Source: Macrostomum lignano (lineage: Eukaryota). Taken from it: DNA of 64,000 nt. The notes beneath the pieces are model-generated. The model had not been told where the DNA came from and made no database searches. It was given only the letters and a program-made list of their open reading frames with translations. Where the stretch lies: positions 32,780 through 96,779 of the forward strand of contig NIVC01003458.1 of assembly GCA_002269645.1 (NCBI GenBank), in the 5' to 3' direction. Positions 4,198-54,047 of the stretch are shown piece after piece (position 1 is the stretch's first letter; every line of letters starts with the position of its first letter). The position numbers were made by a program, and so were the translations under genes.

Positions 4198-5229
4198 AGC
4201 AAACCGGTGTTTCATTCGGCTGAATTGAAGCGAAGAGCAAAAGCCCTTGTCAACTCAAGATCTCGTCAGTCGCCGAATCTGGAACTCAATCAGTCGGGAT
4301 GCTTTTAAAGCTTTATTTCTCCTTGCATCCTTGAGAAGGATTCCCCTTTAAAGCATTGCTTGATTTCTGATTTTTGAAGCATCTTATCGGCTGCTGAATC
4401 AGGAATCTGAAATTCGATGCCCTATTTTGCTGCTCGACATCAACTACAAGGAAAAATCTGTTGTTCTAGATTGATGTCTACGTCTGCCACACCCAGTTCG
4501 GGTCCCGCGGAGTCGCAGCTGAATATCAAAGCTGGACAAATAAACAGCTTGGAAAGTTGCGCGCCAGACAAACTTGAAGGCAGCTGGGGGACCCGTCAAT
4601 TTGACCCCCCCCTTCCCTCGTCAGAGAGTTCGGCTCAGGAATTTCTTGAGAGCGGATCGCCCTCCCCTCAATCAGGGCCGCTGAAACTGCATGGACGAGG
4701 AGTGATAGTGGCCTAATGATCGCTGGGGAATCCACTGCCTGCACGGGGGTACCGCAGACTGAAGACCAATACGAGCGTAGAGGATAGAGGGAGAGGGAGA
4801 GAGAGAGAGAGAGAGAGATGGGGAGAGAGACGGAGGCGACCTTGGTGCTCCGCATCTCGGGTCGCAATGACAGATGAATTTGCATTTTTCCAAGGCATTT
4901 TGGCCTCTTCAACCTCCTCACGGCTGCCTCAAAGCAGGGCAATTGCAATGATTGCACTCCTCTCTTGCTCTTCGTTCTTTTCTTTCTTCTGCCTTCTGCT
5001 TCGTTCTATATATAGGGGTGCAGCACTCGAAGTCGAACATTTCCCGCTGATCTTTCTGAGCTCCCCCCATCCACCTCTCCTGGGATCTTGTAAGATCTGC
5101 AGCTAAATCTGGAATGCCGCTGCTTCAATACCGAAGCTGCAGGATTGATCAAAACCGCTGCTACTATGATAGAAAAATTACAGGGCCCTGCGTGTTGCAT
5201 GGCGTCATAAAATCAGGTTTAAAACAGTT

Positions 5230-5299
5230 CAGGGGCGTAGTCATGGGTGTGGGCCCCATAAGTTCATTGCGCCCCGCTGCAGCGGCTTTGACGCCCCTG
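5230..5299. mobile_element. 70-bp MITE-like element with 9-bp TIR CAGGGGCGT...ACGCCCCTG
   Basis: Perfect 9-bp terminal inverted repeat; second copy at 7825..7894. No TSD seen. Confidence 0.55.
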
Positions 5300-5729
5300 G
5301 TGCTGAAGCCTCTGGTGATAAAGCCCTTGGTGCTAAAGCCCCTGGTGCTGAAGCCTCTGGTGATAAAGCCCTTGGTGCTAAAGCCCTTGGTCCTAAAGCC
5401 ACTGGTGCTAAAGCCCCTGGTGCTAAAGCCCCTGGTGCTAAAGCCCCTGGTGCTAAAGCCACTGGTCCTAAAGCCACTGGTCCTAACGCCCCTGGTCCTA
5501 AAGCCCCTGGTCCTAAAGCCACTGGTCCTAAAGCCCCTGGTCCTAAAGCCACTGGTCCTAAAGCCACTGGTGCTAAAGCCCCTGGTGCTAAAGCCCCTGG
5601 TGCTAAAGCCCCTGGTGCTGAAGCCTCTGGTGCTAAAGTCCCTAGTGCTAAAGTCCCTGGTGATAAAGCCCTTGGTGCTAAAGCCCCTGGTCCTAAAGCC
5701 CCTGGTGCTAAAGCCCCTGGTGCTAAAGC
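5292..5729. repeat. 15-bp minisatellite (GCCCCTGGTGCTAAA)n
   Basis: Direct reading; starts within the right TIR of the MITE-like element. Confidence 0.95.
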
Positions 5730-5922
5730 GCTATCGCGAGAAAACACTCGCAACTAAACTAATCTTCAGCGCACGGACAATCAGATCAATTTCTTCTTTA
5801 AAGTAGTAGATCGTCCCCGAACATTTCAAGGTGAGCCTGCAGTGGATACCAGCCGTCCCCTACGAGCCGAAGCGAGTGAATCAAACCAATCTAAGCTGCT
5901 TGTCTCCGGCTCGCCTGCCTGA

Positions 5923-18600: not shown

Positions 18601-18695
18601 GGTTGCTGAGAAATCTATATTTCAGGATCATTGTCAGCTGAATGCCATTCAAAACCCGAGCTCAGTACTCAAACGCGTCGCTGTCCCATTGGCAG

Positions 18696-19735
18696 GTTCA
18701 TCGCGGTCACGCAGCCCATCAAGTACGCCAAGCACAAGAACTCCAAGCGCACTCACGTGACCATCGCCGGAAGTTGGCTGTTGTCCATCGGCATCGCCCT
18801 GCCAATCGGCTGCGGCCTGCAGAATCTGCAGGGCGTCCGCTATCAGAAAAAATTTCGCAACGTCTGCACCTTTTTTAACGGCGACTTCCTGATCTACTCC
18901 AGCCTGGGCAGCTTCTACATCCCCTGCATAGTAATGCTGGTGCTGTACTATCGCATCTTCACCGTTATTCGGGCTCGAGCTAAGAAAGCGGCCGCGACTA
19001 GACGGGGCAAAGTCTACGAGAACGTCAAGGCCAGCGGCGGCAGCCGGCGGAAAAACCGCGGCGATGCCGAGCAGCAGCCACCAGACGGAGCCGGCGCCAC
19101 TGCCGGTCGAACCGACGAAGTCGCCATCGCATTGACTGAGCAAAAGAAGAGCACCGCCAAGAACAACAGCAGCAGCAAGAAGGATGGCGGAGGCGGAGGC
19201 GGGACGCCAGCGGTGCTGCTGGTGCGGGCGAACCCGAGCCGGCCGGACCGGCTGAGCGTCTCAGCGGTGTCCGCCCGGGACTGCCTGGCCTGTCGCACTG
19301 ACGGCATTTACACCGGGGAGGCGCCGATTCCGCACAGCTGCGGCCTCCATGGAGACTCCGGCGGTCACCATGGCAACCGGGCTGATTTCAAAGACAAGGG
19401 CGACCACGAAGCCGAAGGGGAAGACGAAGAAGGGGAAGAGGAGGAAGAGGAGGATTACGCCAACGACGCGGAGTCGCCGATGCCCCTGCGCGAGAGCCAG
19501 AACTTAGCTGGACCGTCCACTTCAGACAACAGCGGCACAGTTCAAGCGGCGGCGCCTGAGGCAGCGGCGGCGGTGGCGGCGTCGGCTCCGTCGAAAGCCT
19601 CCGAGCCAGTTGGCGGCAAGTCGCAGAAGCGCCTGTTCCAGCTGAAGCTGAAGAAGAAATCGAAGAAAAAGAAAAGCGACAGGTCGGCGGCGCGGCGGGA
19701 GAAGAAAGCGACAAAGACTCTGGCCATCGTGCTCG
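18696..19735 (+). CDS. DRD2: D2-like dopamine receptor exon 3 (ICL2, TM4, TM5, ICL3, start of TM6)
   Basis: Acceptor ATTGGCAG at 18695; RFIAVTQPIKY...YSSLGSFYIPC...RREKKATKTLAIVL; donor G|GTAGGG at 19736. Confidence 0.92.
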
Positions 19736-19824
19736 GTAGGGAGGCGCTTTTTCAATGTCGCTTGGGTTCGATTCCGTGCTCAGAAGCGTCGTGCAATTAA
19801 ATTGTCTGCTTAGGATTAGTTTTT

Positions 19825-25856: not shown

Positions 25857-26865
25857 GCCGAGATTCTCCCACCGAGATTCTCCCACCGAGATTCACCTGC
25901 CGAGATTCTCCTGCCGAGATTCTCCCACCGATATTCTCCCACCGAGATTCACCTGCCGAGATTCTCCTGCCGAGATTCCCCTGCCGAGATTCACCTGCCG
26001 AGATTCTCCCACCGAAATTCTCCCACCGAGATTCCCCTGCCGAGATTCCCCTGCCGAGATTCCCTTGCCGAGATTCCCCTGCCGAGATTCTCCCACCGAG
26101 ATTCTCCCACCGAGATTCTCCCACCGAGATTCACCTGCCGAGATTCTCCCACCGAGATTCTCCCACTGAGATTCTCCCACCGAGATTCTCCCACCGAGAT
26201 TCTCCCACCGAGATTCTCCCACCGAGATTCTCCCACCGAGATTCTCCCACCGAGATTCTCCCACCGAGATTCTCCCACCGAGATTCTCCCACCGAGATTC
26301 CCCTGCCGAGATTCTCTTGCCGAGATTCTTCTGCCGAGATTCCCCTGCCGAGATTCTCTTGCCGAGATTCTCCCACCGAGATTCACCTGCCGAGATTCTC
26401 CCACCGAGATTCCCCTGCCGAGATTCTCCCACCGAGATTCTCCCACCGAGATTCTCCCACCGTGATTCTCCCACCGAGATTCCCCTGCCGAGATTCTCCC
26501 ACCGAGATTCTCCCACCGAGATTCTCCCACCGAGATTCTCCCACCGAGATTCTCCCACCGAGATTCTCCCACCGAGATTCTCCCACCGAGATTCTCCCAC
26601 CGAGATTCTCCCACCGAGATTCTCCCACCGAGATTCTCCCACCGAGATTCTCCCACCGAGATTCTCCCACCGAGATTCCCCTGCCGAGATTCTCTCACCG
26701 AGATTCTCCCACCGAGATTCCCCTGCCGAGATTCTCTTGCCGAGATTCTTCTGCCGAGATTCCCCTGCCGAGATTCACCTGCCGAGATTCTCCCACCGAG
26801 ATTCACCTGCCGAGATTCTCCCACCGAGATTCACCTGCCGAAATTCCCCTGACGAGATTCTTCCG
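25857..26865. repeat. Mixed 14/15-bp minisatellite (CCGAGATTCTCCCA / CCGAGATTCCCCTG-type units)
   Basis: Direct reading. Confidence 0.95.
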
Positions 26866-26891
26866 CAATCGGGGCTGCTTTACGAGCTAGA

Positions 26892-27007
26892 TGGGAAGTT
26901 TTCAGTTTTTCAGCACTGAATTCCCAATTTCTCACCTGCTGGACTTCCAAATTGCAAATGCAGCCAGCAGGCATTTTGTCCGAGCTGCTCTCAAAAGTTT
27001 ATCAGCT
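26892..27007 (+). repeat. Dispersed repeat copy (matches 981..1096)
   Basis: Direct visual alignment, ~115 bp. Confidence 0.85.
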
Positions 27008-27633
27008 TTCAGCTTAGAAAATTATTTGAAGGCTGAGTTTTGCAGTACATGAGGGACTGAGAGACGCAATAATAGAGATCGTTTTTAAGACAGAACGAAT
27101 GTTCTCATATTAGTAACACTCACAGATACTAGAAGAACTAGATGGGCCACTCAGCACATTTGCGTGCAAGCTACTTTCAGTTCAGTAGTAGGTTAAACAG
27201 AAGCATTTTAATGTATTCTTAAGCCAAGGCTCATTTATTGGCTCTTATACCCCCAGCTTAAACCCTCCAACCGCGCCTTTTCACACTACCCCCCGCCCCA
27301 CCCCAATTTTTGATTTTCTCGGAATTCCAGGCTAAAGATGCCATGTATATTTCAGTGGACTGGCTAATGTACATTATTGCTGAACCAATTAGCAAGCTGT
27401 TTACGCCTGCAAGCTTGGGCTTCTAAACTTATCAAAGTCATTTCAGCTGGCTTTATTTTTTAAAAATAGCTTATGCATTCTTCTTTGCTACTGAACTGAA
27501 AGTAGAAAGCTGTTTTAATAAGTATATATGCCTGAATAGTGGCCCATCTAGTTATTTTAGTATCTGTGGTAAAACCTGCCTGTTTTATTGCTGTACTGAG
27601 TGTCGGGCTAATTTGTTTAACAATTTTACATAC

Positions 27634-27783
27634 CTGCAGCGATAAACAGAGCAAAAATGGTCATCATGAGCTGCTTGTTGAGCTTTAGCCGGGGCACCAG
27701 CAGCTCCAGCAGGACCGCCAGCAGGACCGCCAGCAGCAGCAGCAGCGAGAGGACAATTAGTAGCAGCACAATCACTGCGAAAG
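27634..27783 (-). CDS. Claudin-like tetraspan exon 2 (TM2, loop, start of TM3); not in the ORF track
   Basis: Pyrimidine-rich acceptor ...CATCAG (alternative in-frame AG 9 nt downstream, giving start 27774); AFAVIVLLLIVLSLLLLLAVLLAVLLELLVPRLKLNKQLMMTIFALFIAA; donor G|GTATGT. 150 nt, phase 1-1. Confidence 0.72.
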
Positions 27784-27967
27784 CTGATGGCGATGCAAGA
27801 GAGCGAGGCTTGAATTACTACTGCTAGTCAAGTATGAGTAGCAGTGGATGCACGTTTTTATCGTTTTTAAAATGCAGATACAAAGCAAACTTTAAAAAAT
27901 AAAGATAAGAAACTACGAGTATATGTTCACTGAGAATTGTTGAAGGTTTCATGAAGCAGGAGACCAC

Positions 27968-28865
27968 TAAGACCAATCAGGAAACCATGACTAAACAGGA
28001 AACCACTGACCAATCAGGAAACCAGTATGACCAATCAGGAAACCACTATGATTAATAAGGAAACCAGTATGACCAATCTTGAAACCACTATGCTCAATCA
28101 GGAAACCAGTATGACCAATCAGGAAACCACTATGATTAATAAGGAAACCACTATGACCAATCAGGAAACCAGTATGACCAATCAGGAAACCAGTATGACC
28201 AATCAGGAAACCACTATGATTAATAAGGAAACCACTATGACCAATCTTGAAACCACTATGCTCAATCAGGAAACCAGTATGACCAATCAGGAAACCACTA
28301 TGATTAATAAGGAAACCACTATGACCAATCAGGAAACCAGTATGACCAATCAGGAAACCACTATGACCAATCAGGAAACCACTATGACCAATCAGGAAAC
28401 CACTATGACCAATCAGGAAAACACTTTGACTAACAAAGAAACCACTATGACCAATCTTGAAACCACTATGCTCAATCAGGAAACCAGTATGACCAATCAG
28501 GAAACACTATGACCAATCAGGAAACCATTATGACCAATCAGGGAACACTATGAGCAATCAGGAACCCACATGACCAATCAGGAAACCACTATGACCAATC
28601 AGGAAACCACTATGAGCAATCAGGAAACCACTATGATTAATCAGGGAACCACTATGAGCAATCAGGAAACCACTATGATTAATCAGGGAACCACTATGAC
28701 CAATCAGGAAACCACTATGACCAATCAGGAAACGACTATGACCAATCAAGAAACCACTATGAGCAATCAGGAAACCACTATAAGCAATCAGGAAACCACT
28801 ATGAGCAATCAGGAAACCACTATGAGCAATCAGGAACCCACATGACCAATCAGGAACCCACCAAT
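27968..28865. repeat. 21-bp minisatellite (ATGACCAATCAGGAAACCACT)n
   Basis: Direct reading; 7-aa periodic ORFs (MTNQETT). Confidence 0.96.
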
Positions 28866-28897
28866 GCAGCACCATCCAGCTGACATGCCGCACTCAC

Positions 28898-29084
28898 CAG
28901 TGCCATTATCGTAGACCCAAGGCAGGCCGCGGTGCCACTTGCAGCTGGCATTGGTGCTGCACTCGCCCATGCGCCAGAAGTCGAGCGCGGCCGCGGCCAC
29001 GGTTGAGGTGAAGCAGCCGATGCAGCCGGCAACCAGCAGCCAGCGGAGCAGCCGAGACTTGGCCGAGCGAACGCCTGCGCCCAT
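28898..29084 (-). CDS. Claudin-like tetraspan exon 1 (TM1, ECL1)
   Basis: MGAGVRSAKSRLLRWLLVAGCIGCFTSTVAAAALDFWRMGECSTNASCKWHRGLPWVYDNGT, then consensus donor G|GTGAGT; GC3-rich codons. Confidence 0.78.
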
Positions 29085-29472
29085 GGAGCCGATCTCGGGT
29101 CGAGTTCGGAGAGAGAAGAAAAACTGAGAAATTACTCCAAGGCTTCTTCACTATTTAGTAGTGTTGCACTAATCAGGCGGTTTGTGAGAATTTTCGCACG
29201 GACCAACGCCCCTTTATGAACAACAATGCATTGAAGTAGATTGTAAGTTCTTTAGTACCATTGCTGTCTGCAGTGGGCTCAGCTGTGCCCATGTCTTGTT
29301 GCTGGTAAGAAAATTGAGCAAAATTTTAACAAGGATGATAGCGACTGAGCTTAACACAGAAGTATGCAAGGCATGTTTCTTCCTTATTTGGGGCCAACCA
29401 GTAGAGCAGAGACTGGCATCTTTGACGTCACAAACGCAGATTAATACAATTTTAATTGACTTGCGTTTCACG

Positions 29473-30440
29473 AGAGAGAGAGGAGATGAGAGAGGAGAGA
29501 GGATGGAGAGAGAAGAGAAAGGAGAGAGAAGAGAGAGGAGAGAGGAGAGAGAAGAGAAAGGAGAGAGAAGAGAGAGGAGAGAGGAGAGAGAAGAGAAAGG
29601 AGAGAGAAGAGAGAGGAGAGAGGAGAGAGAGGAGAGAGGAGAGAGAAGAGAAAGGAGAGAGAAGAGAGAGGAGAGAGGAGAGAGAAGAGAGAGGAGAGAG
29701 AAGAGAGAGGAGAGAGAAGAGAGAGGAGAGAGAGAGGATGGAGAGAGAAGAGAAAGGAGAGAGAAGAGAGAGGAGAGAGGATCGAGAGAGAAGAGAAAGG
29801 AGAGAGAAGAAAGAGGAGAGAGGAGAGAGAAGAGGGAGGAGAGAGGAGAGAGAAGAGAGAGGAGAGAGAAGAGAGAGGAGAGAGAAGAGAGAGGAGAGAG
29901 AGAGGATGGAGAGAGAAGAGAAAGGAGAGAGAAGAGAGAGGAGAGAGGATGGAGAGAGAAGAGAAAGGAGAGAGAATAGAGAGGAGAGAGGAGAGAGAAG
30001 AGAAAGGAGAGAGAAGAGAGAGGAGAGAGGAGAGAGAAGAGAAAGGAGAGAGAAGAGAGAGGAGAGAGGAGAGAGAAGAGAAAGGAGAGAGAAGAGAAAG
30101 GAGAGAGGAGAGAGAAGAGAAAGGAGAGAGAAGAGAGAGGAGAGAGGAGAGAGAAGAGAAAGGAGAGAGAAGAGAGAGGAGAGAGGAGAGAGAAGAGAAA
30201 GGAGAGAGAAGAGGGAGGAGAGAGGAGAGAGAAGAGAGAGGAGAGAGAAGAGAGAGGAGAGAGAAGAGAGAGGAGAGAGAGAGGATGGAGAGAGAAGAGA
30301 AAGCAGAGAGAAGAGAGAGGAGAGAGAGAGGATGGAGAGAGAAGAGAAAGCAGAGAGAATAGAGAGGAGAGAGAGGAGAGAGAGGAAAGAGAGGAGAGAG
30401 GAGAGAGAGGAGAGAGGAGAGAGGACAGAGAGGACAGAAT
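29473..30440. repeat. Purine-only GA-rich compound satellite
   Basis: Direct reading. Confidence 0.95.
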
Positions 30441-31284
30441 AGAAATCGGAGAGGAGGAACGATAAGAGAAAAGTGAGAAAATGGTTAGAGATACAGGCGA
30501 GAAGCGCAGCAAATACGAGAGTGATTCGTAAATGGGTAAAACAAGGACAAGCATTGGAAGCATTAAATAGCGCAATTCTAGTATAAGTATCAGTTAGACA
30601 CAAAATCCTTCAGCAGGTGCACAGCGGACTTACAAAGTTTATTTGATTCGTCGCAATTTCAAACACAAAATAAACTGTTTATAAAGACATCTCAGTTACA
30701 ACATGCACTCGGTGAAAACGGAAAGCATCCTAAACGGAAACAATAAGAGCTATTAGCGCTGCTTTTTAGTGGAGGCTCAACGGCTGCAATCCTCTTACCA
30801 ATCTTGTTTGGCCATCGAGCTCTCAGCTTTGCAGTTAAATCTGATTCACGCACGATAATCAAGCAACAGTAGTCACATGCTATCTAGTGATGGGACAGAG
30901 ACTGTCCTGTGATTCTACAATGGAACAGAATAACGTTGGTGCAGCTGGTGGTTTGGGGGGAGGACAGGGGTTGATTCCAATGCAAAAAAAATTTTGTGAC
31001 ATTTCTAAGAACAAAAATAGGGAAAATTTACAGTTAAATACGCAGCCGTGCACAGTGGCGCATTCGAGGGAATTCTGGGGATATTTTACAGAGCTAGTGA
31101 GGCATTCACAAAGCAGCACACATACAAACGTGTAGAGTTTGTATTAGTCTGAATCTCAGGCTGAGCACACACTGTAGGAGTGAAGTTTTGCCGTTTTTTC
31201 CTAATTTGGAAATTATTTTCTACTTTTCTAGTGACTAAGCTAGTCGGTAGAAGATTCGGTAGAACTACTTCTCCCAGCACCAAC

Positions 31285-31465
31285 CCCACTCCGAAACCAC
31301 CTCACTCCGCACCCACCTCACTCCGCACCTACCTCACTCCCCACCCACCTCACTCCGCAACCACAACACTCCGCACCCACCTCACTCCGCAACCACACCA
31401 CTCAGAAACCACCTCACTCCGTACCTACCTCACTCCGCACCAACAAAACTTCGCACCTACCTCAT
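31285..31465. repeat. Degenerate 16-bp minisatellite (CAACCTCACTCCGCAC)n
   Basis: Direct reading; same family as 32183..32430. Confidence 0.85.
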
Positions 31466-31605
31466 TTTGGATCAGATTATTGTCGTACATGGCTATAGCA
31501 AACTAGAGACAATACTAATAACAAACCCGGACATTCAGAGAAACAGCAAAAGCACACGGGCTCGGAAACAGCACAGAGAGGGTGACAGAACCAATGGGAT
31601 ATTTT

Positions 31606-32054
31606 TTAAAAATCTCTGAAGTGCTCCTGGCCTGCAGCGCTAGCTGACGGCACCTTCTTCCAATCCTGCTCGTCGTAGACATCGTAGCAGCGCGTATCCC
31701 CGGGATGCTGCACCTGGGGCACAATGGGGGGCGCCATCTTGCGCAGCTCCACGTCCAGCCAGTTGACTCCCTTGAACCAGCGATGGTTGCGGACATCGTC
31801 TGGCCCGCTCTTCATATTGCCCAGCCGCTTGGTGCGGTCCTGCACCAGCAGTTTGCGGACAATGTCGCGAGCGACCGGATCCACCGGACTGTCACGAGGA
31901 AAGTCGAACTTGCCGGACAGAATCTTCTGGTAGATCTGCATCGGATTGTCGTCGTAGAACGGGGGAGTGCCGACCAGCATTTCGTAGATTAGAACCCCGA
32001 GGGCCCAGTAATCTACAGCGCGGTTGTAGCCCTTGCCTTGGATGATCTCCGGTG
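31606..32054 (-). CDS. PRKX: PRKX-like kinase exon 2 (APE to C-terminus)
   Basis: Acceptor TTCTCTTCAG; APEIIQGKGYNRAVDYWALGVLIYEMLVGTPPF...HFRDF then TAA. Confidence 0.92.
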
Positions 32055-32182
32055 CTGAAGAGAACGCAGATTTGGTGCGGATTAGCAGATTTCAATAAGG
32101 TATGCGTTTGCTTGCTCCTTAAAAGCAGTAACTGTTTCTAATATTCCTAAAAAGTACAATTGTGTTTGCTACGCACATCTCA

Positions 32183-32430
32183 TCCACGCCACCCCAATCT
32201 GCACCCACCTCACTCCGCACCAACCTCACTCCGCACCAACCTCACTCCGCACCAACCTCACTCCGCACCCACCTCACTCCGCACCAACCTCACTCCGCAC
32301 CAACCTCACTTCGCACCAACCTCACTCCGCACCAACCTCATTCCGCAACTACCTCACTCTGCACTCACCCCACTCCGCAACCACCCCACTCTACATCTAC
32401 CTTACTTCGCACCTCACTCCGCACTCCATA
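32183..32430. repeat. 16-bp minisatellite (CAACCTCACTCCGCAC)n
   Basis: Direct reading. Confidence 0.92.
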
Positions 32431-32766
32431 TCAGCCATGCTCTTTGAGCTCTTTGAGCTTTTCGAGTTTTATCCCTGAGGCGTTCTTTTCCAGCACGAAC
32501 TCTATTTTTGGGGAAGAGAGATTTTTAGGAATAGCAATTAATCCCCGCCCCCACTGGTGGGTTGCTTATATGACTGGGAGCTTCAGGATGAGATTTGAGG
32601 CTATGAGGCATCGCGTGTTCTGGCCGCTCGCAACTGCCTCGCCCTTTATCTATCAAAATTCATTCACAAAATTTTTGCGCTTGAGCCTGTCACGAACATG
32701 CATTTCGGCTTTGTCAAAGTTTGTTCTCGAATTTCCATGGTTCGTTTTTCGTTCGAGTCCTGACAA

Positions 32767-33157
32767 GTACTGACTGTGCTCAAATACTGACTGTGCTCAA
32801 ATACTGACTGTGCTCAAATACTGACTGTGCTCAAATACTGACTGTGCTCAAATACTGACTGTGCTCAAATACTGACTGTGCTCAAATACTGACTGTGCTC
32901 AAATACTGACTGTGCTCAAATACTGACTGTGCTCAAATACTGACTGTGCTCAAATACTGACTGTGCTCAAATACTGACTGTGCTCAAATACTGACTGTGC
33001 TCAAATACTGACTGTGCTCAAATACTGACTGTGCTCAAATACTGACTGTGCTCAAATACTGACTGTGCTCAAATACTGACTGTGCTCAAATACTGACTGT
33101 GCTCAAATACTGACTGTGCTCAAGTACTGACTGTGCTCAAGTACTGACTGTGCTCAG
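32767..33157. repeat. 17-bp minisatellite (TACTGACTGTGCTCAAA)n, near-perfect
   Basis: Direct reading, ~23 copies. Confidence 0.97.
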
Positions 33158-33878
33158 AGTGTTTTTAGCCTTTGAAGTCAAGCAGGCCATTCACGCTAGC
33201 AGCCCAGTGCCAGTGCGCTATCCGACTGACGCAAGCAGCCGCGCATTTCGGTAATCCAATCAATTTAACTCTGCATCCAAAGCCGTCAATCAAGCTTCTT
33301 TCGGTCAGTCTATCCGTCGGAATAGATTTATTCAAGACTGGAAGAGGAGAGGTGCTAAAAAATATTCCGGCTTTGGGGATCGCTGCACCTGGAAAATCCC
33401 CCCTGGAGGAAGCACTTTTATTCCCTGATGCAGCAGACAGCCTTGAAGCTGGCGAAGGGTGCGTGTGGAACGGGAGAACACGAGCCAGAAGTAATCACCG
33501 TTTCTGGCAAACCGCGCAGACGGCACAGAACTGGCAAAAAAGTTCAAAAGTTCCTTGCAAACTAAATAAGCAGTAATAGGCGGGATAAAGAGGCAAGCAA
33601 TGCTAGAGGAAAAAAAGAAAGCAATTTAATCCGCGGTGAAGCAAAATTACAGGACATTCAAAGAAAACTTGAAGTAAAAATTTGTGACTAAGGTTTCGAA
33701 TGATCGCCAAAAGCAGATTAACATTTCTGATATCAAGTTGATTTTGGCGTAAAAGCCTCTGTTTTCTCCCAGTTTCTCGAAACACTAAGGCGAAAAAACG
33801 ACCCGAGAAAAGAGTCTAGGCTTGGCTTTACTAGACTGTGGGAAAGAAGCAAGCATACGAGTAAGGGAGTAAGGACGA

Positions 33879-34652
<774 letters not shown>

Positions 34653-35271
34653 GACTCAAAAATGCAAAGAAATGTATGCATGCAGGGTTACAGAATGAAC
34701 AAATATTAGACAGAACAGACATTACAGAACGCGCTAAACGCCAGCCATCAATAACACAAGCCAGCAGTGACATTTGTTGCCACCTGTCGCCGAATGTCAG
34801 AGCGCCGGTGAAATGGGGAGCTCAGCAAGAAGAACATGTAGTTGACAGGTAGGGGCCGCCTGGCTGTGAATGACAGCCGGAGGCACCAGCTGAGACGACT
34901 CCCAGACTCTGACAGGTGTGGAGGCAGAATTATGTAAAAAAAACTTCTCGCGCGATCTTCCCCGCTGACAAGAAAAAGCAATTTGAACTGCTCAAGTTAG
35001 CGGAAGAAACGTCTTAGAAATGCTTGACGACAAAAAAACTGGAAATGTCGAAATGTGGGAATCGAGCAGGCAGTGGTGCGAGATAAGCAAGCTCGGGAGC
35101 AGTTGGGCGGGGGTCAAGCATAAATTTGTGCTGCAATCAACTTTACTGAAGTCGTGTCTTGCTGTTTGTTGTCCCTGCATGGACTCTACGGTTGTCTGTT
35201 GAAATTGAAAAACTTCTACAAGCAAAATGAAGTATTGCGCTCTGATTTTTGCCCTTGCCTTTGGTAAGTTA

Positions 35272-35545
35272 TTGTGATTTGTCCGTGGTTTGTCATTTGT
35301 TGTCTGTGGTTTGTCATTTGTTGTCCGTGGTTTGTGATTTGTTGTCTGTGGTTTGTGATTTGTTGTCTGTGGTTTGTCATTTATTGTCAATTGGTTTGCA
35401 ATTTGTTGTCAATTGGTTTGTGATTTGTTGTCTGTGGTTTGTGAATTGTTGTCAATTGTTTTGTGATTTGTTGTCTTGTGGTTTGTAACTCATCTGTGGT
35501 TTGTAATTTGCTGTCTGTGGTTTGCGATTTTTTGTCGATTGGTTT
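35272..35545. repeat. 21-bp TG-rich minisatellite (TGTGGTTTGTGATTTGTTGTC)n, degenerate
   Basis: Direct reading. Confidence 0.85.
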
Positions 35546-35989
35546 TTTGTTTATTGTATATAATGTACAATCTGTTGTTTAGATATATTAGTTATTTTTC
35601 TATATTTATTTTTAAACTCCTAGTATTACTATCTATATTAGCAACAAATTAACAAGTTTATTTAATTAAAACTCGATTCAGACCCTGTCAGATGCCCAAA
35701 AATTGATTTCGCTACCGAACGAGAGCTGAGAAAGGCGGGCACAAAATAGAAGAAAATAATTGAGGCGAAAGAAGAAGACTGAAAAACCCAGAAAGATGCA
35801 GAAGCCTAAGAGAATTAGTGGATGGGGGAGAGAGAATATCGAGTGAAAAATGTTCCAACATTGGGAGGATAGGACCGGGGTCTTTGGGGCAGAAAAAGTG
35901 TCGCCTCTGCTTTTTCTAAAGCGGTTCTGCCTCTCCGAGGACTAAAGCTTGTAACTATATAAGAAGTTGCACCCTGTCTTCCCTACGCA

Positions 35990-36065
35990 ATGCTCCCGCG
36001 GCCAAGCACTGGGCCCGCAGTTTTAAGCGAAGTTGGCAGGCCGAATTTATCCGGACGAAGCTTCG
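35990..36065 (+). CDS. Candidate first exon of the nested gene (MLPRPSTGPAVLSEVGRPNLSGRSF)
   Basis: ATG at 35990, and a phase-1 donor G|GTTAGC at 36066 matches the phase-1 acceptor at 36639 (233 aa in total). TATATAAG lies at 35956-35963. This could be a chance match. Confidence 0.35.
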
Positions 36066-36324
36066 GTTAGCCGTGTTGCCAAGCGGAGCCGAAAACAAAA
36101 TCGAGAGGGAAAGCGAGGGAGGAGAAGAGAAAGGAGAAAGGGGGAAGCAAAGCGATGGAGGGCGAAAAAAGATAGCAGTGTGGGAACAGCTCGAATGTGT
36201 AGGCATTTCGCTTCACTTAGCGGGTATCATTTTGAACTGCGTGTAGCAAAATTGGGTGATATAGCTCGTAAAAATGGTTTCATTTCATCATAAAATAACT
36301 GGGTCCGCTGTTTTCTAGTTCCCA

Positions 36325-36545
36325 ATATTCCCTATCCCGAATATTCCCCAATCCCGAATATTCCCTAATCCAGAATATTCCCTAATCCCGAATATTCCCT
36401 AATCCCTTATATATTCCCTAATCCCTTATATATTCCCTAATCCCTTATATATTCCCTAATCCCTTATATATTCCGTAATCCCTTATATATTCCCAAATCT
36501 TTTATATATTCCCTAATTCAGAATATTCCCCAATCCTGGATAATC
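36325..36545. repeat. ~16-18-bp minisatellite with ATATTCCCTAATCCC core
   Basis: Direct reading. Confidence 0.85.
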
Positions 36546-36639
36546 TCTAATCTTAAAATTGTGTAAACCCAAAGAATTCAGAATCTGTAAGCCTGAACTC
36601 GCACTGTGCAATCTGACATCAACTCCGACTCTCCCGCAG

Positions 36640-37265
36640 CCCTGGCCTGGTCGGGCGCCAGCGCTCAGGAGTCGCACGAGGCGCTGCGTGGCCTCATCAG
36701 GAAGGCCATCTCGGGTCTGGACGCCGTCGACCGTCTGGTTGAGGAACGGCGCAACTCCAGCGAGGTGATCGGGCGCATTGTTGGCCAGGGCTACGAGTAC
36801 TTCTCCCAGTCATCCAGCCTGTCTAAGGTGAACGGTCTCCGGGCCAGCTTCTACGACAGGTACGTCGACATCATGGTGCCGAGGTTCGACATTCCGCCGG
36901 CCGACCAGGCGGAGATCAAGGAGAAGGTGTTCGACCAGATCAAGGAGGCCGAGCCGGGCAAGTGGTTCGAGCACAAGATGCTGTTCAACCCGGCCAGCGA
37001 CCCGGAGAACACCAAGTACATCTGCGTCTACGGCTTCGTCAGGAATGATGGAAACTTCGACTTGGTGGTGCTGGAGGTCCGGGCCTCGTTCAAGCTGGCC
37101 AGGGACGTGCTGGTGATCCAAAACAAGCGCACTGGAGAGATCAGCCTGGAGAGAGAGGAGCTGGAGACCGAGCGACTGCCTGGCGAAGTCGACGAGCAGG
37201 ACGTCCAGGTGGTGCTGAAGTTCTTCGAGGCCACTGCTCTGCGTATTCTGAGCAAAAAGATCTGA
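36640..37265 (+). CDS. Main coding exon of an uncharacterised protein, nested antisense in the PRKX-like intron
   Basis: A 219-codon non-repetitive open frame with very strong GC3 codon bias (GAG, ATC, CTG, TTC, GAC), an acceptor CTCTCCCGCAG at 36639 and stop TGA at 37263-37265. The ORF-track GTG start is probably intronic. Confidence 0.8.
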
Positions 37266-37431: not shown

Positions 37432-39370
37432 TACACTGAGACAGTCACTAACAGCCACTGAGACAGTCACTAACAGCCACTGAGACAGTCATTAACAGCC
37501 ACTGAGACAGTCACTAACAGCCACTGAGACAGTCACTAACAGCCACTGAGACAGTCACTGAGACAGTCACTAACAGCCACTGAGACAGTCACTAACAGCC
37601 ACTGAGACAGTCACTAACAGCCACTGAGACAGTCACTAACAGCCACTGAGACAGTCACTAACAGCCACTGAGACAGTCACTAACAGCCACTGAGACAGTC
37701 ACTGAGACAGTCACTAACAGCCACTGAGACAGTCACTAACAGCCACTGAGACAGTCACTAACAGCCACTGAGACAGTCACTAACAGCCACTGAGACAGTC
37801 ACTGAGACAGTCACTAACAGCCACTGAGACAGTCACTGAGACAGTCACTGAGACAGTCACTGAGACAGTCACTAAAAGAGTCACTAAAAGCCACTGAGGC
37901 AGTCACTAAAAGAGTCACTAAAAGCCACTGAGACAGTCACTAAAAGAGTCACTAAAAGCCACTGAGGCAGTCACTAAAAGAGTCACTAAAAGCCACTGAG
38001 ACAGTCACTAACAGCCACTGAGACAGTCACTAACAGCCACTGAGACAGTCACTAACAGCCACTGAGACAGTCACTGAGACAGTCACTAACAGCCACTGAG
38101 ACAGTCACTAACAGCCACTGAGACAGTCACTAACAGCCACTGAGACAGTCACTAACAGCCACTGAGACAGTCACTAACAGCCACTGAGACGGTCACTAAC
38201 AGCCACTGAGACAGTCACTAACAGCCACTGAGACAGTCACTGAGACAGTCACTAACAGCCACTGAGACAGTCACTAACAGCCACTGAGACAGTCATTAAA
38301 ACAGTCACTAACAGCCACTGAGACAGTCACTAACAGCCACTGAGACAGTCACTAACAGCCACTGAGACAGTCACTAACAGCCACTGAGACAGTCACTGAG
38401 ACAGTCACTAACAGCCACTGAGACAGTCACTAACGGTCACTAAAACAGTCACTAACAGCCACTGAGACAGTCACTGAGACAGTCACTAACAGCCACTGAG
38501 ACAGTCACTAACAGCCACTGAGACAGTCACTGAGACAGTCACTAACAGCCACTGAGACAGTCACTAACAGCCACTGAGACAGTCACTAACAGCCACTGAG
38601 ACAGTCACTAACAGCCACTGAGACAGTCACTGACAGTCACTAAAAGAGTCACTAAAAGCCACTGAGACAGTCACTGAGACAGTCACTAACAGCCACTGAG
38701 ACAGTCACTAAAAGAGTCACTAAAAGCCACTGAGACAGTCACTAAAACAGTCACTAACAGCCACTGAGACAGTCACTAACAGCCACTGAGACAGTCACTA
38801 ACAGCCACTGAGACAGTCACTAAAACAGTCACTAACAGCCACTGAGACAGTCACTAACAGCCACTGAGACAGTCACTAACAGCCACTGAGACAGTCATTA
38901 AAACAGTCACTAACAGCCACTGAGACAGTCACTAACAGCCACTGAGACAGTCACTAACAGCCACTGAGACAGTCACTAACAGCCACTGAGACAGTCACTG
39001 AGACAGTCACTAACAGCCACTGAGACAGTCACTGAGACAGTCACTGAGACAGTCACTGAGACAGTCACTAAAAGAGTCACTAAAAGCCACTGAGGCAGTC
39101 ACTAAAAGAGTCACTAAAAGCCACTGAGACAGTCACTAAAAGAGTCACTAAAAGCCACTGAGGCAGTCACTAAAAGAGTCACTAAAAGCCACTGAGACAG
39201 TCACTAACAGCCACTGAGACAGTCACTAACAGCCACTGAGACAGTCACTAACAGCCACTGAGACAGTCACTGAGACAGTCACTAACAGCCACTGAGACAG
39301 TCACTAACAGCCACTGAGACAGTCACTAACAGCCACTGAGACAGTCACTAACAGCCACTGAGACAGTCAG
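37432..39370. repeat. 22-bp composite minisatellite (CACTGAGACAGT + CACTAACAGC) with variant modules
   Basis: Direct reading; 10- and 12-bp subunits are shuffled. Confidence 0.96.
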
Positions 39371-40044: not shown

Positions 40045-40379
<335 letters not shown>

Positions 40380-41379
40380 AGCATTCGTGAGTTATTGATA
40401 ATGCTTGTTTTGTGAACAGCAGGTCAGCACAGCTTGTATTGCAAATACGGTGCTCCACATTAGCCAGACAATGCATCTCTCAAAGTTTGTGTTTGTTGAC
40501 TGCGCCAGTCTCTCTATCTACATCAATGTCTTCTTAAAGAGTCAATCGCTGAACAGAAGAACTCTGTGCGGTACAGCGCAAATAGGCTGTTTGTGTTGGC
40601 TTATTGGGCTCCAGATTTAGGGCCAGCATATTGGAGCATAACTGTATAGCGACCTTCTCTCCCTGCCTCTCTCTCTCCCCCTCTCTCCATCTTTTTCTCC
40701 GTCAGGCGTCTTTGGCGAACGGCTTGCTGCCAAGCTGCAAGCACCGAATACACAGAAGCGCTCTGCCAGCCATTCGATGCCCATAACCCAGGAGCCGCTG
40801 CGTGTTTACCTACGGACTACAAAGTGAAAGCAAAAAATAGGGGGCAGGGGCCCTAAGCGCTGCTGGGACATTGCTTCGGGAAAGCAGACTTGGCTGACCG
40901 CCCGAAAAAAGGTCCAATGTTTTTGGCATGGCTGGCTGGGAACTAGGTCGAACGCTTGTCCTAATTGAGATAATTTTCTGTAATACGACAAAGCCACCTC
41001 CCAGTCCCTGTTCGGGCAAGCGAGTTTGCGAGCTCTCTTTCACTCAGCTCTTCTTTTGCCTCTGTCCGCTGAAAGCAATTATAACATCCGTAGGATATCT
41101 TCGCCTATCTAGATATTCCCCACAGAAATCGTACAACTGCTTCCCCAGGCTGTATGAGATTTGAAAATAATCAGGCATGATCAGTTGATGTCCGTTTGAC
41201 TCCACAGGATCACACATGTAAGTACGGCATCACGGCAGTGGCCCCACAGACAAAATTAGGAAGCAGTTTAGGAAAGCCCATAAAGATAGAAAAGTAACTT
41301 TTTAATCTGGCTCGATGAGTGTTTATATAACTGATAGTGAAAGCATTGCGAGGTTTTGAGCTCATATGAAGCTAGGCCA

Positions 41380-41742
41380 TAGACATAATCAATCCTGCAA
41401 GCTTCGGGAAAAGATTTACCATAGACATAATCAATCCTGCACCATCTAGAGAGAAATTTACCAATAGACATAATCAATACTGCACGCTCTGGGGAGAGAT
41501 TTACCATAGACATAATCGATACTGCACGCTCTGGGGAGAGATTTACCATAGACATAATCAATCCTGCACGCTCTGGGGAGAGATTTACCATAGACATAAT
41601 CAATACTGCACGCTCTGGGGAGAGATTTACCATAGACATTATCAATCCTGCACGCTCTGGGGAGAGATTTACCATAGACATAATCAATCCTGCACGCTCT
41701 GGGGAGAGATTTACCATGGACATAATCAATCCTGCACGCTTG
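41380..41742. repeat. 42-bp minisatellite (ATAGACATAATCAATCCTGCACGCTCTGGGGAGAGATTTACC)n
   Basis: Direct reading; 14-aa periodic ORF on -. Confidence 0.93.
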
Positions 41743-42299: not shown

Positions 42300-42992
42300 A
42301 GTGAGATTAGAGTGACACTGGGTGATGAGGGATGAGAGTGAGACTGCTATTGAGACTGATTGATGGGGGATGAGAGAGAGTGAGACTGCTATTGAGACTG
42401 AGTGATGGGGGATAAGAGAGAGTGAGCTTGCTAGTGAGACTGAGTGATGGGAGATGAGAGAGAGTGAGCTTGCTAGTGAGACTGAGTGATGGGAGATGAG
42501 AGAGAGTGAGCTTTTTAGTGAGACTGAGTGATGGGAGATGAGAGAGAGTGAGCTTGCTAGTGAGACTGAGTGATGGGAGATGAGAGAGAGTGAGCTTGCT
42601 AGTGAGACTGAGTGATGGGAGATGAGAGAGAGTGAGATTGCTAGTGAGACTGAGTGATGGGAGATGAGAGAGAGTGAGATTGCTAGTGAGACTGAGTGAT
42701 GGGAGATGAGAGAGAGTGAGATTGCTAGTGAGACTGAGTGATGGGAGATGAGAGAGAGTGAGATTGCTAGTGAGACTGAGTGATGGGAGATGAGAGAGAG
42801 TGAGCTTGCTAGTGAGACTGAGTGATGGGGGATGAGAGAGAGTGAGCTTGTTAGTGAGACTGAGTGATGGGAGATGAGAGAGAGTGAGATTGCTAGTGAG
42901 ACTGAGTGATGGGAGATGAGAGAGAGTGAGCTTGCTAGTGAGACTGAGTGATGGGGGATGAGAGAGAGTGAGCTTGTTAGTGAGACTGAGTG
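42300..42992. repeat. 42-bp minisatellite (AGTGAGCTTGCTAGTGAGACTGAGTGATGGGAGATGAGAGAG)n
   Basis: Direct reading. Confidence 0.95.
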
Positions 42993-44211: not shown

Positions 44212-44720
<509 letters not shown>

Positions 44721-45055
44721 ACCATTTTTTTCGGATTTCTGTATACTGAATTTAGTATTAGAATGTATTTATACCATATAAATTATACCAGCTATCCCGC
44801 ATACTAGGCCGCCCGTAGGATGTGTGAGCAGATCTGAAGCCTCCCCAATCCAATCTCATCGAACAGAGGGCCGCGTCGCCAGCACCTGCTGGAACCCATC
44901 TATCGGATTGCAATATTTTTCTCTCAAACCTCAGCTTGGCATCGAGCGCTTTCTGCTGCAGCTGCCTCTGCCTGAACCCGCAGGCTCGAGTGCCTGCAAT
45001 CGCTGCGTCTCCGCCTCTCCCCCTCCTCTTACCGCCCTGGTCCATCAGCGCTCAC

Positions 45056-45686
45056 CGAGATACTCTGGCGTGCCGCACATCGTGTAAGTCCGGTCCTTCA
45101 GCACCTTGGCGAATCCAAAGTCCGTTATCTTGAGGTGGCCCTGCGTGTCTAGCAGCAAGTTTTCCGGCTTCAAATCGCGGTAGACAACCGACAGGTCGTG
45201 CAGGTAGATGACGGCGGTGAGAATCTCAGCCGAGTAGAACTGTGCACTGGAGTTCGAGAACGTTCCGGCCGTTCTCAAGTAAGAGAAGATCTCGCCGCCG
45301 CACACGAAGTCGAAGATCATGTACAGGAACTTGACGTCGTGATTGGTCCAGAACAGGCTAACCAGGAATGGGTGATTAACCATCTTCAGAATCGACTTCT
45401 CATTCTTGACGTGCTCAACCTGTTTGAGCCGCATCACGTCCTCTATGATGAGAATTTTCAATGCGAAATACTCGCCAGAAGTTTTCTCCCTGATGACCAT
45501 GACGCGGCCGAAGGTCCCGGTGCCCACGGTGCGCAGCAGCTCCGCTTGGCGAAGGGAGAATTTCTGCCAGTCAACGGCGGATTGGGTTCCGCTGATGAGC
45601 GGCTGCTGCTGCTGCTGCAGCTGCATCTTGGACACGGCTGAGGCGACTTGATCCACCCCGTTTTGGCCGCCACCTTTCTCAGCCAT
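45056..45686 (-). CDS. PRKX: PRKX-like kinase exon 1 (subdomains I-VIII)
   Basis: MAEK...GTGTFGRV...YFALK...VYRDLKPENLLLD...ITDFGFAK...TYTMCGTPEYL; donor G|GTGAGC. Confidence 0.92.
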
Positions 45687-52043: not shown

Positions 52044-53232
52044 GCCCAGGGGGTTGTCGTGCGGTTCACAGCCATGAGGGCCAGCCCCCCAAGACACAGA
52101 GAATGTACATGCCTGACGATTAGAAAGTCAAAGGACCGCTGTACACCCTGTGTGAGCGTGTGCATGCGTGCGTGCTTGTGTACAGTGTTGGCGAGCTTGT
52201 TTGTGCTCAGGGAGTCAGCGGAATGGCCAGAATTGACGTCAGCGCTGCTTGTGGCCCGATGTTTCCGAGAGCGTTGCGCCAGGGTGCCCGAAGCCCTCCT
52301 TCCTACTTGTCATTCCTGTAATCCAAGCAGATCTCTCTGTATTTTACCTTAAGCGGTAGGTCTAGGGGTTAAGTTGTATGAATAAAGTCTAACGAATGGG
52401 TTCTGACACACGCTAAGTCGCTAGCCAAGTGGTTTGACGAATTCGCCGCCAGCTCTTTTAAGTTAAGCGGAATTGACCTGGGTTAGTACGCTGTTGAATG
52501 GAAACTCAGGTAAGATGAAGAGTGGAAAAATAACCGGAGCTTCAGTTCACCCTGTCTTATTGCTATTAGAATTTCTATATTTCACATGTGAATGCACCTG
52601 ACCACGCATGCATCATTGTTACTAGCGCTTAGTCATCTGTATTCTGCAGATATTCACAAAGCCAAATATTCATGCGGATTTCGGGAACGCAAACCTGTTT
52701 GTTCATTTCCGCGATTGTCTCCGAGCGGTTCCGCAGTCCTAATTGAGTTGGCAGGGATTTATCCCTGAGGAATCACAATTTGTCCCCGATAGCGCCCCAC
52801 CTGCTCGCTACAGTGAGCAGATCCGCCTCTCACTTCCCTAACCACCTCTCTATCTCCTCGCATAGAAATGGAAGCATGCTCATTGCTCAGTTGATCCAAT
52901 TAGTTCCTGCAAGCTATACTGCCGGATCCGACTGCTCCTGTACTCAGTCGAACGTAAGACACTGTTAGCAACAGGATCGTTAGTTCAGCTGGTATCTGCT
53001 CGGTGTGAGGCTTTTATTGCCAAAAACGGGAGAGCAGCGATAAAAATACTGGGCGAAACGACTGGCATTGATCTGCTGCCTACCCACCGCATGGCATCAT
53101 AAATTTATGCAGACAAAGATGTGGAGTTTGGCCAAGATTAGGAGGGGAAGGGGGCAGTGGAATCGACGAGGATGAGAGGAGAGAAAGATAGCGGATAGGT
53201 GAAAATCTATCAGCTTCGTCGTGAAGGATATT

Positions 53233-54047
53233 CTTAAACTGTCTGGACCTCTGCCTCCTCTCTCCCTGTCTCTTAAACTGCCTGGACCTCTGCCTCCTCT
53301 CTCCCTGTCTCTTAAACTGTCTGGACCTCTGCCTCCTCTCTCCCTGTCTCTTAAACTGCCTGGACCTCTGCCTCCTCTCTCCCTGTCTCTTAAACTGCCT
53401 GGACCTCTGCCTCCTCTCTCCCTGTCTCTTAAACTGCCTGGACCTCTGCCTCCTCTCTCCCTGTCTCTTAAACTGCCTGGACCTCTGCCTCCTCTCTCCC
53501 TGTCTCTTAAACTGGCTGGACCTCTCCCTCCTCTCTCCCTGTCTCTTAAACTGCCTGGACCTCTGCCTCCTCTCTCCCTGTCTCTTAAACTGCCTGGACC
53601 TCTGCCTCCTCTCTCCCTGTCTCTTAAACTGCCTGGACCTCTGCCTCCTCTCTCCCTGTCTCTTAAACTGTCTGGACCTCTGCCTCCTCTCTCCCTGTCT
53701 CTTAAACTGCCTGGACCTCTGCCTCCTCTCTCCCTGTCTCTTAAACTGGCTGGACCTCTCCCTCCTCTCTCCCTGTCTCTTAAACTGCCTGGACCTCTGC
53801 CTCCTCTCTCCCTGTCTCTTAAACTGCCTGGACCTCTGCCTCCTCTCTCCCTGCCACTCTCCCTGCCACTCTGCCTCCTCTCTCCCTGTCTCTTAAACTG
53901 CCTGGACCTCTGCCTCCTCTCTCCCTGCCACTCTCCCTGCCACTCTCCCTGCCACTCTCCCTGCCACTCTCCCTGCCACTCTCCCTGCCACTCTCCCTGC
54001 CACTCTCCCTGCCACTCTCCCTGCCACTCTCCCTGCCACTCTCCCTG
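53233..54047. repeat. 39-bp minisatellite (CTTAAACTGCCTGGACCTCTGCCTCCTCTCTCCCTGTCT)n followed by a derived 12-bp (CCACTCTCCCTG)n array
   Basis: Direct reading; the switch occurs near 53850-53930. Confidence 0.95.

Follow-up and report, generated by a model that had tools for sequence, protein, structure and literature searches.

The stretch of DNA analyzed here, which we call the window, comprises 64,000 nucleotides of the genome of the flatworm Macrostomum lignano. A protein kinase gene lies on its minus strand, and one intron of that gene probably holds, on the plus strand, a two-exon gene for a secreted protein. The features on which the discussion turns are listed below, with a slash marking a splice junction or cleavage site.

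45048..45686, minus strand: kinase exon running from the ATG through GTGTFGRV, YRDLKPEN and DFGFAK (Pfam Pkinase and motifs)
32055-31921, minus strand: kinase exon with APEIIQGKGYNRAVDYWALG, downstream of the intron that holds the nested gene
31860-31699, minus strand: kinase exon with …HRWFKGVNW, also downstream of that intron
35227..35263, plus strand: proposed exon 1 of the nested gene, 12 codons from the ATG plus one base (MKYCALIFALAF plus G), with a phase-1 donor, G/GTAAGT (predicted)
35264..36639, plus strand: proposed intron of 1376 nt, with donor GTAAGT at 35264 and acceptor tctcccgcAG at 36638-39; it would contain satellites at 35279-35545 and 36325-36517, TATATAAG and a first exon suggested previously
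36640..37265, plus strand: exon 2, the remaining CDS including the TGA (ORF, GC3, identical annotated protein, family homology); it would encode the last part of the signal peptide (A-LAWSGA) along with the entire ~195-aa domain
36642..37262, plus strand: domain of an unnamed family (profile coverage, AlphaFold model, conserved positions)
36325..36517, no strand: upstream satellite, 10.6 copies of a 19-nt unit, ATATTCCCTAATCCCTTAT, intronic in the proposed model
37434..39369, no strand: downstream satellite, about 87 copies of 11/22-nt units (CACTGAGACAGT…)

The exon at 45048-45686 is the first coding exon of the kinase and lies upstream of the intron holding the nested gene. It encodes an AGC/PKA-type protein-kinase domain (Pfam Pkinase, E = 1e-43), and its closest match in the PDB is PKA C-alpha (E = 4e-79), well ahead of PKG. 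Exon 2 of the nested gene is antisense within a ~13-kb intron of this PKA-family kinase. An earlier note on this DNA had described a gene nested antisense in a PRKX intron; the nesting, the orientation and the PKA family are borne out, and the PRKX label can be kept in the form PKA/PRKX-like only. That the kinase is PRKX rather than PKA-C is plausible and is presumed here from the GTGTFGRV motif. The transcriptional interference with the kinase for which the earlier note saw room in this layout is unsupported. The intron and its surroundings are crowded with micro- and minisatellites, namely, (ACAG)n, (TAAC)n, (TATC)n, two 42-mers, a 17-mer and a 39-mer (33884-34655, 40062-40378, 44215-44720, 42334-42992, 41377-41740, 32764-33156 and 53115-53999), several of which give long spurious ORFs.

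On the plus strand, an open frame in the ORF list spans 36606..37265 (219 codons). The exon within it, 626 nt long and non-repetitive, follows a pyrimidine-rich AG acceptor at 36639 (tctcccgcag/CC, phase 1) and ends in a TGA at 37263-65. Because stop-free satellites yield many long ORFs in the window, the length of this frame is no argument for a gene; the case for exon 2 comes from codon periodicity, conservation and homology. Read from 36642, GC at codon positions 1/2/3 is 0.60/0.35/0.87, against 0.45 for the whole window. In a window-wide tblastn search with the domains of the family described below, 81 match exon 2 and none matches any other place, giving a single copy of the domain in the window. 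Exon 2 is a genuine protein-coding exon, and its earlier description as a non-repetitive, GC3-biased exon of 626 nt, flanked on both sides by satellites (36325-36517 and 37434-39369), is accurate.

The identical protein is annotated at two places, on two contigs, in the M. lignano assembly GCA_002269645.1, each time nested in a minus-strand Pkinase gene; the window locus is a third copy, with unique sequence ~98-99% identical to the other two. The annotation of this assembly was built from RNA-seq assemblies via StringTie, TACO, TBONE and TransDecoder (PMC5730564), and the annotated CDS therefore implies plus-strand transcripts. In GenBank, this CDS is single-exon and 5'-partial and starts 5 nt inside exon 2, so that it lacks the proposed exon 1. 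Comparison of the three copies yields 1 difference, a synonymous one, in the 626 nt of exon 2 and 18 differences in about 1010 nt of unique noncoding sequence (Fisher's test, p=0.0016; against the intron alone, p=0.046). About 10 of the differences between copies fall in the ~250 nt of unique sequence adjoining exon 2, and the unique intron sequence at 35540-36340 has 8 substitutions and a 39-nt indel. The comparison thus supports constraint on exon 2, and modestly so, because the copies are young. The length of the proposed intron varies among copies through satellite copy number and the 39-nt indel. The upstream 19-mer satellite is much longer in the other two copies than in the window, and the indel is a GA-rich stretch (36118-36156) present in the window copy and missing from both GCA_002269645.1 copies.

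The frame of exon 2 holds no ATG from the upstream stop (36594) until Met-83 of the translated exon. A scan of 26000-36600 for ATGs leading into a phase-1 donor, with G/GTRAG as the consensus, leaves a single consensus-donor candidate in these 10.6 kb, 35227..35263 (aaaATGAAGTATTGCGCTCTGATTTTTGCCCTTGCCTTTG/GTAAGT). It has an in-frame stop 21 nt upstream, the ATG context aaaATG and a GC3 of only 0.5 over its 12 codons. Together with the next 36 nt it is 100% identical across the three copies; the ~125 nt upstream of it carry 4 substitutions and a 4-nt indel. Spliced to 36640, it gives MKYCALIFALAF-A-LAWSGA/SAQESHEAL…, with a predicted signal peptide, MKYCALIFALAFALAWSGA/SAQ, in which a basic start precedes a hydrophobic core of 14 residues and a cleavage motif of the small-x-small type. 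The leader would be completed by the first residues of exon 2, in agreement with the secreted architecture of the family. We regard 35227..35263, predicted from the sequence, as the best model of the first exon and probably the right one. With it, the locus is, in our assessment with good confidence, a two-exon M. lignano gene, CDS join(35227..35263, 36640..37265), of 220 codons, antisense in the ~13-kb kinase intron. The predicted 220-aa precursor would yield a mature product of about 201 aa (23 kDa, pI 5.2) containing a single Cys and a single N-x-S site. In the putative 5' UTR, the window copy alone has a 7-codon upstream ORF (35177-35203), whose ATG at 35179 is removed by a 4-nt deletion in the other two copies.

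A different 5' end would result if 36640 were trans-spliced to the spliced leader, or if this were a 5'-truncated copy, leaving an untranslated or N-terminally truncated remnant read from Met-83 or not at all. Trans-splicing affects 30-39% of M. lignano genes (PMC8629364, PMC5730564), the annotation pipeline cuts transcripts at trans-splice sites (PMC5730564), and the 5'-partial GenBank CDS has its start no more than 5 nt from the acceptor. The M. lignano spliced leader, CGGTCTCTTACTGCGAAGACTCAATTTATTGCATG, itself ends in an ATG (PMC8629364); joined at 36640, this ATG is out of frame and opens a 44-codon upstream ORF. As a start codon for exon 2 it was rejected, being in frame only at a weak cag/G acceptor at 36669. 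Against a remnant, however, exon 2 is far more conserved than its surroundings, with its only change synonymous and its codon bias intact. Further, joining a phase-matched exon that has a consensus donor yields a complete signal peptide, just as the architecture of the family predicts, and the ALAWSGA that opens exon 2 can be understood only as the last part of a leader peptide. We therefore consider a trans-spliced or truncated remnant unlikely.

The earlier note had placed the first exon at 35990..36065, where it would be driven by TATATAAG and would lead to a 234-aa protein without a signal peptide. The ATG, a phase-1 donor (G/GTTAGC) and the upstream TATATAAG are indeed all present, but the donor is weak, GC3 is 0.56 by hand count versus 0.87 in exon 2, and there is no hydrophobic leader despite the secreted family. 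The copies also differ nonsynonymously at 36041, and the ATG, about 30 nt from the TATA box, sits about at the transcription start that this box would determine, leaving no room for a 5' UTR. This placement is very probably wrong, and we retain 35227..35263, which gives a signal peptide instead.

The protein had previously been called an orphan matching no named family. The second half of that description holds: Pfam searches with the window protein, 10 relatives, all 59 aligned members and the 220-aa precursor gave no recurrent family, NCBIfam gave no match, and the PDB, searched by sequence and by family profile, gave nothing below E = 0.2. A word-indexed protein search, queried once with the protein alone and once with the 59-member alignment, returned just the locus itself and its UniProt model. 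The family was revealed instead by an exhaustive HMMER (phmmer) search, followed by jackhmmer iteration among the sequences found. This recovered 125 cluster representatives at E <= 1e-3 and 33 at E <= 1e-10 (all counts are of such representatives), among them a two-domain paralogue in the same genome, so that the protein is no orphan. This paralogue, PAA93599.1, is the best relative outside the locus's own copies (E = 2.5e-33). The jackhmmer profile spans positions ~7-205 of 207, making the entire exon product one domain. Among the relatives, 34 have two domains and 2 have three; a start Met is present in 113 of 124 and a signal-peptide-like N-terminus in 78 of 124, and the window protein's own signal peptide depends on the predicted exon 35227..35263. 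The family thus appears to consist mostly of signal-peptide proteins with one to three tandem domains, from M. lignano, at least one ciliate and many eukaryotes represented in metatranscriptomes.

We looked up 30 of the clusters. Names are attached to the M. lignano ones only, all as "hypothetical protein" (PAA93599.1, BOX15_Mlig000053g1, and its relatives), and the others come from ENA, JGI and Logan assemblies, mostly as contigs of 1-2.5 kb. One relative, P0044, lies on a 64-kb contig next to a RuvBL1 gene with 83-84% identity to its Tetrahymena, Pseudocohnilembus and Ichthyophthirius counterparts; all named sequences among the top matches of this RuvBL1 are from ciliates. Because of this gene, the contig is judged to be ciliate and hence the family at least partly so. 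The earlier impression that similar proteins occur in protists and rotifers is therefore right in its first half, and no rotifer or other named animal was seen among the relatives in the 30 clusters. A search of viral contigs for loci related to another relative, P0033, found nothing. Several members (P0005, P0022 and P0044) come from the same environmental samples (loci L010, the 64-kb ERZ4201065 contig, and L005-L007). P0044 ends in TGA; in P0022, translation with the ciliate genetic code would continue past the called TAA for more than 50 codons, and some family proteins may therefore be truncated by gene callers.

The tested family consensus runs G-x-G-F/Y, F, G, P, W, F-x-L-A-P-D, S…GG, P, D, FF. 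Gly, Pro, Phe and Trp occupy nearly all of its conserved positions, joined by three Asp and one Lys, and no Cys is conserved. At the columns conserved at >=60% within the domain, the window protein matches the consensus exactly or by a close substitution (Y for F, T for S, R for K) in 18 of 21, keeping G50, F54, G65, P85, W108, F150, L152, A153, D155, P180, F194 and F195. It departs from the family by P154R in the LAPD motif and by the missing GG pair and loop, and two conserved columns of the C-terminal tail (G and P) are absent as well. It reads as a divergent yet recognizable member. In two-domain relatives, the first and second domains are of distinct types, conserved across proteins. A neighbor-joining tree places the window domain near the first domain of P0003; median BLAST scores do not separate the types. 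Just after the signal peptide, many relatives (e.g., P0027, P0032, P0034, P0043 and P0126) have a motif resembling L-x-F-L-x-(D/E/G), and some (P0006, P0022, P0048 and P0086) have an L-x-F-L-like motif at the extreme C-terminus. The motif could mark propeptide processing or sorting sites and is absent from the window protein; at the C-terminus it is not enriched over shuffles (12 versus 7.2 expected).

Among named sequences, PAA93599.1 (BOX15_Mlig000053g1, UniProt A0A267H7R2) has the same domain as the window protein at 26% identity. Like the window gene, it resides in the M. lignano genome, with a signal peptide and a host-like GC3 of 0.85. It is a 622-aa protein with two full domains and a ~200-aa N-terminal region, encoded by a single exon and not nested, whereas the window gene has one domain, has its leader interrupted by an intron, and encodes neither the GG loop nor the C-terminal tail. 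Its own relatives in M. lignano are BOX15_Mlig000053g3 and Mlig031413g1, and a search of literature and supplements for its gene ID found nothing. The relatives from environmental eukaryotes (P0044 on the ciliate contig, P0017, P0021 and P0022) have the same ~195-aa domain and share its conserved positions (G-x-G-F…F, W, F-x-L-A-P-D, P, FF); they carry a signal peptide, have no Pfam match, are 17-30% identical to the window protein and in many cases are AT-rich. Many of them have an S-x-x-G-G loop and a G…P tail, both absent from the window protein.

One further sequence is a rival gene model more than a relative. UniProt A0A1I8HHY5 (P0002 in our set), a 353-aa "NERD domain-containing protein," models the same type of locus and uses the same 36640 acceptor. 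Its first 88 residues, however, are an antisense translation of the kinase exon (31705..31966 on the plus strand, joined to 36640), and it has internal deletions and reads past the stop, which mark it as an ab initio artifact. Neither this model nor the 220-aa precursor nor the paralogue has any Pfam match at E <= 10, NERD (PF08378) included.

AlphaFold with the 59-sequence alignment gave a model with a pLDDT of 86.9 and a pTM of 0.64, in keeping with the earlier description of a compact alpha/beta protein; a single-sequence model (pLDDT 52) was discarded. The predicted elements are a helix (8-35), a hairpin (38-66) and helices at 68-81 and 86-101, followed by five antiparallel strands (108-179) and a helix (185-206). 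Foldseek found no match to the model in the PDB at E<0.05. At least 12 chains of CapZ and related capping proteins, along with ARNT/AHR PAS domains, recur among the best PDB matches, and the order of elements is similar to that of the CapZ alpha/beta fold and of PAS domains (helices, hairpin, helix, five-stranded antiparallel sheet, long C-terminal helix). None of these matches reaches significance (E >= 0.058; query TM 0.2-0.27; CapZ RMSD above 20 A). Further, CapZ is cytosolic, whereas the window protein is predicted to be secreted; the two distinct domain types of the two-domain relatives, for their part, recall the CapZ alpha/beta pair. We take the modeled resemblance to CapZ as a lead and not as a classification. 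No START, Bet v 1, takeout/JHBP or BPI structure (helix-grip/TULIP) is found among the 50 best Foldseek PDB matches listed; the order of elements may resemble that of these lipid-binding folds.

A different picture emerged from Foldseek against BFVD, in which the model matches uncharacterized Mimiviridae proteins over its full length (E = 5e-8 to 3e-3, probability about 1), namely, Hyperionvirus A0A3G5A862, Terrestrivirus A0A3G4ZN21, Borely moumouvirus A0A6G6ADX5, Edafosvirus A0A3G4ZYQ2 and A0A650DA38. At 187-266 aa they are similar in length to the window protein, and TM is 0.34-0.58. Identity is only 8-12%, the RMSD is 10-20 A, the structures are predicted on both sides, and HMMER missed these proteins. 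The predicted family fold may hence also be present in Mimiviridae, by fold only, and the likeness is suggestive without being proof of homology.

Taking the gene, the family and secretion together, we hold this reading of the locus to be very probable. We propose that exon 1 and the first residues of exon 2 encode a cleavable signal peptide, MKYCALIFALAFALAWSGA/SAQ, and that the mature protein is a single copy of the unnamed ~195-aa alpha/beta domain, which would enter the secretory pathway and act outside the cell or inside secretory granules. There it might serve as a noncatalytic binding or assembly module, possibly pairing with a second such domain. The look of the family is structural rather than catalytic because its conserved positions are almost all Gly, Pro or aromatic, with no conserved Cys and no catalytic-looking constellation; likewise, because two-domain relatives keep two distinct domain types, the two domains might pack as a pair. 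Judged from these family features, a noncatalytic role in the extracellular space or in granules is a tentative suggestion.

With respect to origin, the GC3 of the window gene (0.87) is close to that of the kinase exons (0.79) and the paralogue (0.85), and because codon usage is host-like there is no sign of recent transfer. The earlier proposal of horizontal transfer is, to that extent, unsupported, and a literature search on horizontal gene transfer in Macrostomum turned up nothing relevant. Any transfer would have to be old, given the host codons, the leader intron, the paralogue and the nesting in three diverged copies. It is conceivable, though we rate it as somewhat speculative, that the flatworm copies go back to an old horizontal acquisition from a protist or giant virus and were later domesticated into secreted or granule proteins. 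Domestication would then account for the host codon usage, the spliceosomal intron in the leader and the duplication into one- and two-domain forms. The domain in question would be a fold without a characterized relative, found in ciliates and other protists, in Mimiviridae and, among animals, so far only in Macrostomum. Vertical descent with wide loss may instead be the origin.

The more radical version of this idea, hinted at in the earlier note, makes the protein a pore-forming cytolysin or effector recently acquired horizontally from a protist or giant virus. The patchy distribution (flatworm, ciliates, protists and, by fold, Mimiviridae), the predicted secretion and the long amphipathic terminal helices are what such a protein might show. 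The fold comparison, on the other hand, gives it no support, since neither a pore-former nor any other PDB fold is matched at E<0.05, and aerolysin, MACPF/CDC, ClyA, actinoporin and gasdermin are all missing from the 50 best Foldseek PDB matches listed. Recent arrival also has against it codon usage equal to that of the host, a spliceosomal intron that interrupts the signal-peptide coding sequence, the presence at another place in the genome of a two-domain paralogue without introns, and nesting common to three diverged copies; we regard a newly acquired cytolysin as highly improbable. Contamination of the assembly by culture-associated protists, which the protist-like or environmental source of most relatives might bring to mind, can be dismissed, since each of three separate copies of the exon has M. 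lignano satellites on either side inside a metazoan-type kinase intron, and its codons are those of the host; the host-like codons, the spliceosomal intron and the nesting common to diverged copies exclude it and also make recent transfer unlikely.

The two-exon model corrects three gene models of the locus, that is, the 5'-partial CDS of GenBank, the artefactual "NERD" protein of UniProt and the first exon of the earlier note, and replaces them with a testable model of a putative secreted protein. The supposed orphan appears to belong to a sizeable domain family without a Pfam entry, a solved structure or a characterized member; other members already stand in the databases as hypothetical proteins, and the kind itself is undescribed. 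It is unusual for a family to range from ciliates to a flatworm and, by fold, to giant viruses. Should it prove to be carried as cargo in regulated secretory organelles, or to be a module transferred from viruses or protists, the family would link the secretory biology of protists and flatworms; otherwise, it would be one more lineage-restricted secreted protein.

Some features of the window lie farther from the nested gene. From ~55670 to the window end at 64000 runs a satellite with a ~661-bp unit, in at least 12 copies that are near-identical in the 300-nt stretches compared. An ORF at 5114-5803 on the plus strand has a sub-threshold match to Extensin_1 (66.7 bits; cutoff, 105) and is probably a proline-rich low-complexity or repeat sequence and not a gene. 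A long ORF at 18631-19797, also on the plus strand, matches Pfam 7tm_1 (rhodopsin-family 7TM) with an E value of 2e-19 and is probably a GPCR exon of a neighboring gene.
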